A DNA stretch of 51,734 bases from Octopus bimaculoides (lineage: Eukaryota): assembly GCF_001194135.2 (NCBI RefSeq), contig NC_068993.1, forward strand, positions 25,548,317-25,600,050, in the 5' to 3' direction. Position numbers and translations under genes: made by a program. The notes under the pieces were generated by a model. The model saw nothing but the letters and a program-made list of their open reading frames with translations. It was not told the origin of the DNA and made no database searches. Shown here in pieces: positions 955-50,211 of the stretch (positions within the stretch are counted from its first letter, which is position 1; the number at the start of each line of letters is the position of its first letter).

Positions 955-1077
955 CTATGCAAGAATGTCCCTTTGGGTGAAGATTGTAGCCATCATTACA
1001 TTTACAAAAGTAACTGCCTAATGTATTGACACACTTATGGTCACATTTACCATTCTTCTTTTTACATTCATCAATAT
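955..1077 (-). CDS. Exon: calcium-binding EGF ([41 protein letters not shown])
   Basis: ttttag|ATATTG acceptor, ATAG|gtaagt donor, 123 nt. Six-Cys spacing with DxDEC and CxNxxGSYxC motifs. Confidence 0.95.
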
Positions 1078-1735
1078 CTAAAATACAATAGAAGACAATA
1101 TCATAAATAATTAGCAAGATAGTGCTGAGAAGAGACATAAAAACATACACAAAGAAACACATGCATGTACAATGCTGTATCATTTTATATCCTTTACTCT
1201 TTGCACAAAACTATGATCCATATTTTGTCAGTAAGAAATGCTGCCATGCATTTATGAAAATGTTACATTCTAAATTTACTTAATTTTTCTTTTACTATAG
1301 TTTAAAAAATAATTTTTTTTTATTTCCTCAATATCCAAAAACTGAAACAAGATCTTATTGTCAATGGTAAGATCTCAGTAAGAGATGCAAATATCTTTAT
1401 CTGATATCAGACAGCATAATTTGATTACTGACGCAGTCACTATTGGAAAAAAATACAGAGACAAGAAATGGAGTATGATTACCTGATAAGAAAATTGTAA
1501 AACAAGTAAATACAGAAGCATGTAAATGCATAAATCTAACTGAGCTAGATATACTGGGAAGGATAACAGAAGCCTTCTAATATTAGAAGGCTTAAATTAG
1601 AAATAAAGTGTAAGCAGAATATTGAAATAAGAATGTGGATGCTACTCGATGTAGTGAGTTAAGAAATTTTAATTAGATTTACTAAAATATGGAATGTTGT
1701 AATGAATAAGTCTGATCTTTAGCAGCACAGTGATA

Positions 1736-1780
1736 ACTCCAGACATGTTTTGGTCTTATTAGTCTTCATCAGTAAAACAT
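1736..1780 (-). ncRNA. Decayed minimal hammerhead-ribozyme-like motif (Penelope-type), probably inactive
   Basis: Minus strand reads UUUUA-CUGAUGA-AGACUAAUAAGACC-AAAAC-AUGUC-UGGAG. The core CUGANGA, palindromic ACAUGU stem III and GUC site are present, but GAAA is changed to AAAA. Confidence 0.4.
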
Positions 1781-2489
1781 AGTCTAACCATAAGTGTACA
1801 TTTTTTAAACAACTATACAGATATTAGTGCTTCATGAATGAACACTTAGTGTTGTAATGATTTAATGGAATGACTAAGGAAAATAAATACACAGGTATAC
1901 ATCTGCCTAAAAACAAATAGAAATTTGGGCACTAGGATTCTATATTTAATAAACATTTCAAGATAATATTCTTTTGCAATTCAGGATGAGAATTAATCAT
2001 TAAGATAGTAATTGTTCATATCAGTAACTAATAAAAATTTCTTTGTTTATTACAACAGTTATTTTTAACCCCAACTAAACTATGAAAATTTTATGCCATG
2101 GATATCTGTAGGTATTTTTTTACAGCAATTCCTATAAAAATAAAACTTCAGTTATCAACACATAGTTCATATATCTCAGTTACAGTATAAGAAAAAGATA
2201 CCAAAATGGATTAAGCAGAAAAGGAAGATTGATTTTGATAGCAATGTCCATATATGGATTAGCCAATGGAAGTAATGTTAATAGGATTTATATGCCCAAT
2301 ACTAGAATAGGGATAAGATTAGTTTGTTGTAAAAAATGCAGTTAGAGCAATGGTGTAGTCTGATGTGTAAAGAATAATGCAGAACCAATGCAGAAAGTTA
2401 TTAGAAAAGCTAAAGCAGCCATGACTGAATAAGGTGTAAAACTAGGATAATTGAAGAGCATTCAATGTGGGAGCAAAAATGTTTAGCAG

Positions 2490-2846
2490 ATGGTTTCGGG
2501 TTCAGTTCCACTGCATGGCACCTTGGGCAAGTGTCTTCTACTATAGACTCAGACTGACCAAAGCCTTGTGAATGGATTTGGTAGACGGAAACTGAAAGAA
2601 GCCCATCGTATATGTATGTATACATTTATGTGTGTATATCTTTATGTTTGTGTTTGTCCCCCACCACCACTCGACAACTGGTGTTGGTGTGTTAACATCC
2701 CTGTAACTTAGCTGTTCAGCAATAGAGACTGATAGCATAAGTACTAGGTTTCAAAAAAATAATGTCCTAGGGTTGATTTGTTTGACTAAAACCCTTTAAG
2801 GCAGTGCCCCAACATGGCCACAGTCAAATGACTGAAACAAGTAAAA
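2490..2846 (+). mobile_element. tRNA-derived SINE, 5'-decayed
   Basis: B-box-like GGGTTCAGTTCC, CORE-like CCTTGGGCAAGTGTCTT segment, internal TG-rich tract and A-rich 3' end. Confidence 0.7.
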
Positions 2847-2920
2847 GGTAAGGGATATCTGAGATCTATCTCCCTGCTAACTTCACTAAGCAATTCAACT
2901 TCTGTCTTTGTCACTTAAAT

Positions 2921-3138
2921 TATTGGTTTCAATGTTTGGCACAAAGCCAGCAAGTATGGAGGAGAGGTTAAGTCGATTACATCATCCCCAGTACTCAACT
3001 GGTACTTGTTTTATCGATCACAAAAGGATGAAAGGCAAAGTCAACCTCAGCAGAATTTGAACTCAGAATGTGGAGATGGATAAAATGTCACTAAGCATTT
3101 TGTCCGGCATGCTAACCATTCTGCCAGCTTGCTGACTT
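2921..3138 (-). mobile_element. ~215-bp tRNA-derived SINE, family A
   Basis: Reverse complement of the copies at 8051 and 42031 (shared GCTGGCAGAAT head, CTGAGTTCAAATTC B box, TTGTGCCAAA tail). Confidence 0.8.
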
Positions 3139-3991
3139 CTTTGTCATTTTAATTATTGACAAATCTTTCGGTGATGATTCTTACATCTTTAATCCTGGTC
3201 CCAAGACTTGATATCTACATGACTACAAAGTCAACCCAAAATGGAATGATAAATGGTAATAAATGATGGGAAAGTTTGCACTTATGGCAGTCTGTTTAAT
3301 TGTAAATGTTAGTTGAAACAGTTTAAATGTTCAGATACTGATATGTTTGACCTAACATTTCACCTGGTTTTGCTATCAATTGCTAACAGCTGACCCCCAC
3401 ATATAGAGCAGACAAACATTGTCTGTCAGCTTTTGTTGTTACCATAACAACCATCTGTGTGTTAATGTTCTCACCTTCATGTGGCATCACATGGACAAAT
3501 TCATGCCACACTAATGATATAATTCAAATAAGTATCAAAATAAATTTTAAAAATTAAGTCAGTAGTTGATATTTACTTAAGACATTTAAATATTGAAGCT
3601 ACATAGTACAATACATTGCATCACACTTTACATCAAAGAACTACTTGACTATAAAAGTACAGTATGTTACACTAGTACAAAAATACAATAGGTTACACTA
3701 GTGCATTTTATTATACCAAACCAGACCATATAACTACACTACTACCAACACTATCTTACATATTGCACAACACCAGACTATATCTCACCTCAATATTTCA
3801 TTAGACCACCAAATTGTACTAGAGATCACATTACACTAAATAGATTAAAATATCAATATCTCTGTACCTCACTCCATTATTTTACAAAAGTATCATTCCA
3901 TAAAACTGTTAGTAGTAGTAAACACCATCACAACTGTAGCAGGAGAAGCCTTAGTAAAATATCAAATTTTAACAAAATGAAATTGACTTAC

Positions 3992-48099: not shown

Positions 48100-48131
<32 letters not shown>

Positions 48132-48154
48132 TGCACACACACATACACACACTT

Positions 48155-48290
48155 ATAGTAATTCATTTCTTGGATGTAACCCTTGATTTAGGCACAGGTT
48201 CATATAGGCCTTACTGCAAACAAAACAAAAGGTTGTTACTCTTCATCACAGCCTTCTGCCATCCCCTATTAGTGTTTTAAAACTTTGTAA
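48155..48290 (+). mobile_element. Penelope-like RT thumb fragment
   Basis: FLDVTLDLGTGSYRPYCKQN matches the PLE FLDVTLxLxxGxYxPYxKPN motif. Confidence 0.6.
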
Positions 48291-49349
48291 AGGGAGTCAG
48301 TGGGAAGATGTTGAATCTATCCTCCAGTAAAGGGGTCTTCAGCACAGTGGTCTCCTATTATAACAAGGCTCTGGTAGCCTGCAGGTTCAAAGACAGCCTC
48401 ACTTACATGCCCAGCCCTAACACCTGCAAGAGAAAGTGCCACTGAAGAGTCATGTGGTTTCCACACCACCATCACTTTTTCACTCATCATGAAAATCTGG
48501 ATGGAAAGGATCTTCCTTGGATTAACTGATAAACATTTTACACAGGACCATAAGTATGGAAAAATATTGAATAGGTATAACTTAGAAGCAATGTTCAGTT
48601 GTGCACTTAGTACAAAAATATATTAGTGCCCCGAAGCCACAGACAGGGGCAAGGTACTCATGTAGGATATACAGTGAGTACCCAGTAACTGGTCAATTCA
48701 GCATGGAAGCCATGGTCTACGAAACAGAAATGGGGTTGACCAACATCAGTAGAGCAACTCAATACATACACAGAAATATGTTGGGGTAATAGAGGGCCCT
48801 TACAAGGCCAGATTGAATAATCAGAATTCCTCATTTAGAATCCAAGAGAGGTACAATGTTATAATTTTAGCCAGTTTATATGACAATTAAAAAGGAAGTA
48901 AAACCATTTTCAAGTCCTATCATATTTTTCTTTTTATACCCCAACAGCTGCACTGCCAAATTGAACAATATTGCCAGAAAGTGTTGAAATTGTGATGTGT
49001 GGTCAACAACTTCAGAGAAATTAAGCTAGTATGCATCTGATGTATTGTTCTGTTTATCTGTAAATTCCTTTGCCATTCCCCTGTGTGACATTTTCATTAA
49101 TATATATGTAATACATATACAGACATCTCAAGAATAAATAGACAACCCTCATTATATTGTTTCATATATGCAGGCATTACTTTGTACTTCAAACTTGTTA
49201 ATGTATTGTGCACAAAGCATACCAATTTAATACTAGATAAAGTATTTAAATGTATTGAATGGCATTTTGCTTCTCTCCAAAATGGTTCTGCTTGTGTATA
49301 TATATTAGTGTATGTATTTTTATGTATATATGCATACATATATATGGCC

Positions 49350-49562
49350 AATACCAGTGCCACATAAATGGCATCTGTGCCAGTGACAGGTAAAAGACAT
49401 CCAGTACATTCTGTGGAGTGGCTGGCATTAAGAAGGGCATCCAGCCTTAGAAACGAAGATAAACCAGACTGGAGCCTGGTGCAGCTCTCTGGCTTACCAG
49501 TTTCAGTCAAACCATCTGACCCATGACAACATGGAAAATGGACATTGAATGATGACGATGAT
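49350..49562 (+). mobile_element. Family B retroposon end with (GAT)n tail
   Basis: Matches the copies at 27538, 33592 and 43626. Confidence 0.75.
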
Positions 49563-50055
49563 ATATGCAAATACATGGGTATTAATGTGTGTCTATATCT
49601 ATATGTATGTAAGCATGTGTGCCTGTTTATACATGTGGAGGTGTGTAGATTAGTGGTTATTGTGTTGAACTCATGATCATGAGATTGTGGTTTCAATTCC
49701 TGGATTAGTCAATGCATTGAGTTCTCGTACAAAACACTTAATCTCACCTTGCCCCAATCTGGCAAAAGTAAGTAACCCAGTGATGGACCAACATACTGTC
49801 CAAGTAAGGATGTGTATATATATATATATATACTATAGAATTTGAGAAACCAGCCTATTCAGTCTATGGATCAGAGAGGACCTTTGATCTTTTTTTTTTA
49901 TGTTTAAAAGTTATGTATGCGTATATATATATATATGTATTTATACATTGATCCTGGAGCAGAAGCTAACATCAAAATATAACACCTTAAATAATATAAA
50001 AGATCTCTATAAAGGAAAGAAATTTTTAAGAGCTTTTTTATGAATGAGATTTCAC

Positions 50056-50211
50056 CTGTACAGTGTTCCTTTCCAAACCTGTCTCTAATATATCCTGATG
50101 CACAAAAACAGTCTTCAATGGATGTGCTGCCAGAATCAGATGTGAATGAATCTGCTGGACAACGTTGACAACCTGTATCATTTACACTTCGATAACTATC
50201 ATGTGGACATT
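50056..50211 (-). CDS. Exon: GCC2/GCC3 (ephrin-receptor-like) Cys repeat (ECPHDSYRSVNDTGCQRCPADSFTSDSGSTSIEDCFCASGYIRDRFGKEHCT), absent from the ORF track
   Basis: Translated by hand. ttttctttcag|AATGTC acceptor, ACAG|gtgaaa donor, 156 nt, phase 1-1. CP..SY...CxxCP...T...GSTSxxDCxC motif as in SVEP1/SCUBE-type repeats. Membership in the same gene is inferred from strand and phase. Confidence 0.88.

Follow-up and report, generated by a model that had tools for sequence, protein, structure and literature searches.

We analyzed a 51,734-nucleotide stretch of the Octopus bimaculoides genome (contig NC_068993.1, positions 25,548,317 to 25,600,050; hereafter, the window), which carries on its minus strand a series of exons for a modular extracellular protein built of GCC2 repeats, calcium-binding epidermal growth factor-like (cbEGF) domains and Sushi (CCP) domains. 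The window very probably represents ~49 kb from the middle of a very large gene encoding a secreted cbEGF/Sushi protein, a lineage-specific architectural variant of a known family.

The window is AT-rich (GC 34%), holds many microsatellites and is interrupted by four runs of N (9620-9757, 17666-18021, 29374-29401 and 44793-44932). A six-frame scan for cysteine-rich open segments, after which exact boundaries were placed, yielded a series of EGF- and Sushi-like segments on the minus strand together with one GCC2-like segment near 50200. All 13 resulting exons (G1 to E13, named by domain type and order; Table 1) have AG acceptors and GT donors at their boundaries, phase 1-1 and lengths divisible by three. 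Joined, they give 1845 nt, or 615 stop-free codons, with one domain per exon in the order GCC2-EGF-cbEGF2-Sushi-cbEGF2-Sushi-cbEGF3-Sushi-cbEGF. The 13-exon, 615-codon model proposed in the first-pass annotation was thus reproduced, every exon lying where it had been placed and the domain order being as stated, and the two motifs it had singled out are present: DGCENFQVP and DGCDQFQVP in the two 195-nt Sushi exons at 28864 and 20242, and DNGRC.H.C.NT.GSY.CECNQG in the EGF exons at 24230 and 19967. Because E13 ends in a GT donor, the gene extends beyond window position 1.

The domain assignments are supported by Pfam, which places FXa_inhibition, cEGF or EGF_CA in eight stretches of the joined peptide and Sushi in three. 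Taken alone, the G1 exon reaches 30.5 bits as an Ephrin_rec_like (GCC2) repeat (cutoff 23.1), and the individual Sushi exons reach 33.6-41.1 bits on PF00084 (gathering cutoff 20.7). We classified a domain as cbEGF if it has six cysteines, D/N-x-D/N-E/Q-C at its start and C-x-D/N-x4-F/Y-x-C-x-C between Cys3 and Cys5. The full calcium-binding and hydroxylation consensus is present in eight of the nine EGF exons; E2, which has neither motif, encodes a plain EGF domain. Adjacent cbEGF domains are joined by linkers of one residue. Across the Sushi domains C4, C36, C50, C63 and W56 are invariant, and an extra invariant pair, C20/C32, brings the number of cysteines to six rather than four. The best whole-domain PDB match of Sushi S8 is an E-selectin CCP (39.8 bits); an AlphaFold model of the Sushi domain, built from an alignment of only three sequences, is of poor quality (pLDDT 58.9).

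Octopod orthologues and whole-protein architecture

Orthologues were sought with a profile of the three Sushi exons. Two proteins stood apart from the rest, having few Sushi stretches but ~50-59 bits for each, versus ~10-20 for all others: Octopus vulgaris CAI9731634.1 (P0153; 1864 aa, from a gene of ~397 kb, automatically named "SVEP1") and Argonauta hians GAB1601778.1 (P0160; 1421 aa, "fibrillin-1-like, partial"). The protein had been described as unnamed, a description that does not fit, as both are public gene models. Exons E6-E13 align with the O. vulgaris protein at 93.8% identity (350/373), and exons E3-E13 with the Argonauta protein at 64.5% identity (331/513), in both cases free of alignment gaps. 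These values place the window in an octopus near to O. vulgaris yet distinct from it.

The Argonauta locus (L001; BAAFZT010000020.1, 51.5 kb, no N) contains orthologues of all 13 exons in unchanged order, with unchanged AG/GT splice sites and phase and with nothing extra between them. Exon lengths equal those in the window, including the 120 nt of E11, except for G1, which is 3 nt longer. This identical exon series in a gap-free locus answers the gap question for all four gaps of the window, including that in the large G1-E2 intron. Between Octopus and Argonauta, the 12 exons of equal length differ at a nonsynonymous proportion (pN) of 0.21 and a synonymous proportion (pS) of 0.72, for a dN/dS of ~0.1 with dS saturated. 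Judged by their sequence, the 13 exons are functional coding sequence under purifying selection. The S8-E9 intron (20090-20241) measures only 152 nt, compared with 0.6-14.6 kb for the other introns of the window and ~760 nt for its counterpart in Argonauta.

The two orthologues place the window within the architecture of the whole protein. Toward the N-terminus, long cbEGF runs are broken by single GCC2 repeats: P0153 has E5-G-E6-G-E (where E, G and S stand for EGF, GCC2 and Sushi), and in Argonauta three EGF exons, E-E-E, lie directly upstream of G1-E2. The G1 repeat of the window is the last of these single internal GCC2 repeats. It is followed by an array with one to three cbEGFs per single six-cysteine Sushi, comprising 7-8 units in all, three of them in the window. 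After E13, both orthologues continue E-S-E-S-E-S-E-S-S-HYR-HYR-S-GCC2. Their C-terminus thus reads Sushi-Sushi-HYR-HYR-Sushi-GCC2 and then stops, with the HYR-HYR-Sushi-GCC2 tail accounting for 285 residues. Neither orthologue has a hydrophobic or transmembrane segment. Pfam finds no VWA, pentraxin, CUB (PF00431), TB/8-Cys (PF00683), C-type lectin, GAIN or 7TM domain in P0153, the N-terminus of which may be incomplete, or in P0160, and no CUB or TB/8-Cys domain in the window model. The first-pass claim of one modular extracellular protein gene is supported.

Relationship to known families and alternative explanations

Queried with the joined peptide, a word-indexed search gave no orthologue but only proteins of up to 1075 aa at 27-37% identity, mostly generic cbEGF-rich ones; giant proteins seem to be missing from this index. 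The same search with the orthologue tail Sushi-Sushi-HYR-HYR-Sushi-GCC2 returned nothing at E<=0.001. In a local phmmer comparison, the octopod tail is collinear over 270 residues with the C-termini of the tick proteins P0042 and P0081 and the spider protein P0094, up to their stops. The tail also aligns with residues ~570-1200 of SVEP1-type proteins of 3400-3600 aa (P0165, P0168 and P0169). By Pfam these large proteins have true SVEP1 architecture, with a VWA domain, two HYR, four GCC2, a pentraxin and 28-31 Sushi domains, the VWA, the pentraxin and the Sushi counts being those of P0165 and P0169.

The octopod protein belongs with other protostome proteins in a cbEGF-GCC2-Sushi(-HYR) family. 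This family includes the tick 'SCUBE2 isoform X4' (P0042), the spider 'SVEP1' (P0094), a crayfish protein (P0012) and the gastropod 'fibrillin-2' proteins of Aplysia (P0006), Nucella (P0003), Biomphalaria (P0016) and Patella (P0074). Its members share with the octopod protein single GCC2 repeats within cbEGF runs, and a last GCC2 that leads through cbEGF into six-cysteine Sushi. The gastropod relatives, automatically named fibrillin or MEGF6, read En-GCC2-E6-GCC2-E-S-S and have only the terminal Sushi pair. In the tick and spider relatives the order is ...GCC2-E3-S-S-HYR-HYR-S-GCC2-stop, a tail like that of the octopods, and the crayfish protein also has HYR. Signal peptides are present at the N-terminus of the tick, spider and bivalve relatives, all of which lack a transmembrane segment.

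What sets the octopod protein apart is the array. In gastropod and arthropod relatives, one to three cbEGFs separate the last GCC2 from the terminal Sushi pair, whereas the octopod protein has ~19 extra domain exons at this position, arranged as (cbEGF)1-3-Sushi units between the last internal GCC2 and the terminal pair. Among 270 retrieved relatives, a Sushi with EGFs on both sides occurs only in the two octopod proteins, five and six times respectively, which within this set supports the first-pass view that known proteins do not alternate short cbEGF runs with single Sushi domains. No orthologue with the same domain order was found in vertebrates or model invertebrates among the proteins sampled, and our literature search found no paper describing the cbEGF/Sushi array architecture or studying a member of the octopod subfamily.

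Better-known families share parts of this architecture. With SVEP1/polydom (VWA-GCC2-CCP-HYR2-CCP-GCC2-EGF-pentraxin-CCP~30), which has selectin-like six-cysteine CCPs, the octopod protein has in common a CCP-HYR-HYR-CCP-GCC2 module in the same order. However, it lacks the VWA, the pentraxin and the long uninterrupted CCP array, its HYR module is C-terminal, and in place of the Notch-type EGFs of SVEP1 it has many fibulin/SCUBE-type cbEGFs. SCUBE1-3 (cbEGF9-spacer-GCC2x3-CUB) combine the same cbEGF subtype (FXa_inhibition/cEGF) with GCC2 and are among the best-scoring named matches (35-37% identity), but the octopod protein differs in lacking CUB, in its single, interspersed GCC2 repeats and in containing Sushi and HYR. 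Tandem cbEGF rods recall fibrillin and LTBP, and Argonauta and gastropod homologues are automatically named fibrillin-like, yet the TB/8-Cys domain is absent. The EGF-to-CCP junction is shared with selectins (C-lectin-EGF-CCPn-TM), and the six-cysteine spacing of the octopod CCPs presumably resembles that of selectin CCPs, but there is no lectin or transmembrane segment and the CCPs are single, not tandem. The protostome family shares the HYR module with SVEP1 and its cbEGF plus GCC2 logic with SCUBE. The absence of VWA, pentraxin, CUB and TB domains means that the octopod protein is not an orthologue of SVEP1, SCUBE or fibrillin.

Of the alternative explanations, an assembly artefact, in which the repeated exons result from scaffolding across the gaps, or a decaying array of pseudo-exons, is the one to which we give the least credence. 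The domains are repetitive and the span includes four gaps of estimated length, all of them with (TA)n or (CA)n/(TG)n tracts at their edges; such microsatellite tracts are the usual cause of breaks in short-read assemblies. However, all four gaps are intronic and none touches an exon, and S5-E6-E7-S8-E9 lie together on one gap-free contig (18022-29373). Identity between the paralogous exons is just 42-65% at the protein level and 55-74% at the DNA level, and their introns share only short interspersed repeats; copies this old, in introns with so little in common, show that the pattern is not due to a collapsed or duplicated assembly. The exon order is identical in the gap-free Argonauta contig and the O. 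vulgaris protein, frames and splice sites are intact, and pN lies well below pS. It is also very unlikely that more than one neighboring gene or transcript supplies the exons, such as an upstream cbEGF/GCC2 gene ending at E2 beside a downstream cbEGF/Sushi gene starting from E3, even though public annotations lean that way, as set out below. E2 ends at a phase-1 GT donor without a stop, and E3 starts at a phase-1 AG acceptor without a methionine or signal peptide; both Argonauta exon ends at this junction are likewise phase-1 splice sites lacking a stop or start. An intron of just 967 nt separates E2 from E3 in the window (~670 nt in Argonauta), GAB1601778.1 carries the label 'partial', and in gastropod relatives a single protein runs from GCC2 directly into cbEGF and Sushi.

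The O. vulgaris database name would make the gene an octopus orthologue of vertebrate SVEP1/polydom, which we consider highly improbable. The HYR-HYR-CCP-GCC2 tail is indeed collinear with the proteins of SVEP1 architecture, but Pfam finds neither VWA and pentraxin nor a long Sushi array in the octopod proteins, both of which end after GCC2, and the tail matches the ~1000-aa tick and spider proteins at least as well, over its full length to their stop. The first-pass annotation erred in the other direction in setting SVEP1 aside: the orthologue tail is collinear with part of true SVEP1, and the protein branches from a known family rather than being an independent invention. There is similarly little chance that the protein is the ectodomain of a membrane receptor of selectin-like or adhesion-GPCR-like type, a receptor ectodomain having been offered as an alternative at the outset. 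Its EGF-CCP junctions and six-cysteine CCPs are selectin-like, with E-selectin the best whole-domain structural match, and its cbEGF pairs resemble those of ADGRE5/CD97; the octopod orthologues and arthropod homologues nevertheless end after their last GCC2 without a hydrophobic segment, and C-type lectin, GAIN and 7TM domains are absent.

Several points weigh against the reading we prefer, that of one very large gene for a secreted, lineage-specific variant. The joining of the 13 exons in one mRNA is predicted from phase, splice sites and orthologous gene models, and these models are discontinuous. In Argonauta, the annotation breaks the gene: a first model stops at L001 9309, where E2 ends, and a second begins inside E3, at 10001. 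P0153 lacks orthologues of G1, E2, E3, E4 and S5, with an upstream cbEGF joined straight to E6 at residues 719/720, and probably also lacks the three cbEGFs found upstream of G1 in Argonauta; G1-S5 were either left out by the annotation or skipped as a cassette. P0153 also begins without a signal peptide. The lineage comparison is that of the 270 retrieved relatives. Lastly, the role that we regard as most likely, in the extracellular matrix, in adhesion or in humoral binding as for SVEP1, is proposed by analogy only.

Intronic repeats and neighboring features

Introns of the window contain no further EGF, Sushi or GCC2 exons in a profile hidden Markov model scan of all open segments in six frames, and scans with Rfam, for tRNA and with Pfam for intronic open reading frames (ORFs) found nothing else in the window. 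An interspersed repeat of ~200-270 bp, resembling a short interspersed nuclear element (SINE) or miniature inverted-repeat transposable element (MITE), occurs in introns in both orientations, with copies 73-84% identical; it has no tRNA-like or other RNA match (ARAGORN, Rfam). Copies of a second, unrelated interspersed repeat of ~140-190 bp are 74-84% identical. Within the 14.6-kb G1-E2 intron lies a local tandem duplication (39400-39857) with a period of ~184 bp and ~80% identity, and the ORF spanning it has no Pfam match. Long imperfect tracts of (CA/TG)n, (TA)n and (TATG)n type give rise to spurious Cys- or Tyr-rich ORFs in several frames.

Table 1. Exons of the cbEGF/Sushi gene and repeated sequences in the window. 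Positions are those of the window; P0153 is the O. vulgaris protein and L001 the Argonauta locus.
Feature	Position	Strand	Description	Orthologous sequence
Exon G1	50056-50211	-	Complete GCC2/Ephrin_rec_like repeat (ECPHDSY...EHCT), 156 nt; PF07699 30.5 bits	Argonauta L001 3912-4070, 68% identical
Exon E2	35346-35471	-	EGF-like, non-Ca-binding (DIHPCLQIGLNC...), 126 nt	Argonauta L001 9182-9307, 64% identical
Exon E3	34253-34378	-	cbEGF, 126 nt	69% identical to Argonauta exon
Exon E4	31664-31786	-	cbEGF, 123 nt	76% identical to Argonauta exon
Exon S5	28864-29058	-	Six-cysteine Sushi/CCP, 195 nt; Pfam Sushi 37.5 bits	Argonauta L001 12720-12914, 63% identical
Exon E6	28124-28246	-	cbEGF, 123 nt	86% identical to P0153 residues 719-760
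Exon E7	24230-24352	-	cbEGF, 123 nt	95% identical to P0153
Exon S8	20242-20436	-	Six-cysteine Sushi/CCP, 195 nt; Pfam Sushi 33.6 bits	P0153 residues 802-866
Exon E9	19967-20089	-	cbEGF, 123 nt	95% identical to P0153
Exon E10	12962-13084	-	cbEGF, 123 nt	90% identical to P0153
Exon E11	11801-11920	-	cbEGF, first loop one residue shorter, 120 nt	93% identical to P0153
Exon S12	3992-4180	-	Six-cysteine Sushi/CCP, second subtype, 189 nt; Pfam Sushi 41.1 bits	98% identical to P0153, 70% to Argonauta
Exon E13	955-1077	-	cbEGF, 123 nt	93% identical to P0153 residues 1051-1092
SINE-/MITE-like repeat	2921-3142, 7788-8010, 8049-8277, 13818-14086, 15223-15349, 32451-32672, 42031-42139, 46708-46920		Interspersed copies	
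Second repeat family	33591-33776, 49377-49562, 27557-27726, 43626-43767, 44994-45048		Interspersed copies	
Microsatellite tracts	18058-18957, 6084-6271, 12926-13396, 35329-35856		First tract lies beside gap 17666-18021	

Two features of the Argonauta locus were also recorded. At the start of the Sushi after the 18th domain, P0160 carries ~16 tandem copies of PPGTTVT(L/V)A (residues ~766-909; between L001 26161 and 30448). This insert looks like a mucin-type Pro/Thr linker, and at its position O. vulgaris has only a short NNNN-containing loop. The downstream neighbor of the orthologue (L001 48493-51498) encodes a Casc1_N/Casc1_C protein, a possible synteny anchor in locating where the gene ends 3' in O. 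bimaculoides.

Proposed origin, function and significance

Domain trees indicate that the paralogous domains are all older than the split between Octopus and Argonauta. The Sushi domains fall into two clean groups, S5/S8 and S12/S15/S17, while the 40-residue EGF domains do not resolve a block duplication. The suggestion that the array was made by duplicating an EGF-EGF-CCP block is plausible, S5 and S8 being sister domains, and the two Sushi groups fit duplication of a unit. In the octopod, and perhaps the cephalopod, lineage, cbEGF-Sushi exons would have been inserted and multiplied in the stretch after the last internal GCC2 and ahead of the terminal Sushi pair, a process that the uniform exon phase would have eased.

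The predicted product is a multidomain glycoprotein that is secreted, is rich in cysteine, binds calcium and has at least ~1900-2200 residues. By analogy with fibrillin-type cbEGF pairs, its cbEGF pairs and triplets, when loaded with Ca2+, would form short stiff rods that space the Sushi and HYR modules, so that the terminal HYR module and each single six-cysteine CCP may act as protein-binding sites shown at intervals. Haemocytes in the O. vulgaris brain atlas (PMC9712504) are marked by a gene named svep1 (LOC115222969), which could not be mapped to the octopod cbEGF/Sushi gene. A bolder proposal, which we consider unlikely, is that the (cbEGF)1-3-Sushi array is a cephalopod- or octopod-specific innovation that lengthened a short SVEP1/SCUBE-like matrix protein into a long rod with 7-8 spaced selectin-type CCPs, in which symmetric exons permit cassette-type isoforms, and which might serve adhesion or recognition by haemocytes or in the closed vasculature.

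The gene is already in public databases and its family is recognizable; what is new is the lineage-specific arrangement of cbEGF and Sushi domains. No long-standing question is opened by it; invertebrate genomes often contain EGF and CCP modules in new combinations. At least two of the public gene models are incomplete or split, and the public names "SVEP1", "fibrillin-1-like" and "SCUBE2" are artefacts of similarity. The locus nonetheless offers a clean case of exon shuffling, with one phase-1 exon per domain and cbEGF-Sushi cassettes multiplied inside an older family. For cephalopod biology, it points to a very large, conserved, secreted protein of adhesion type that may be worth locating in expression atlases.

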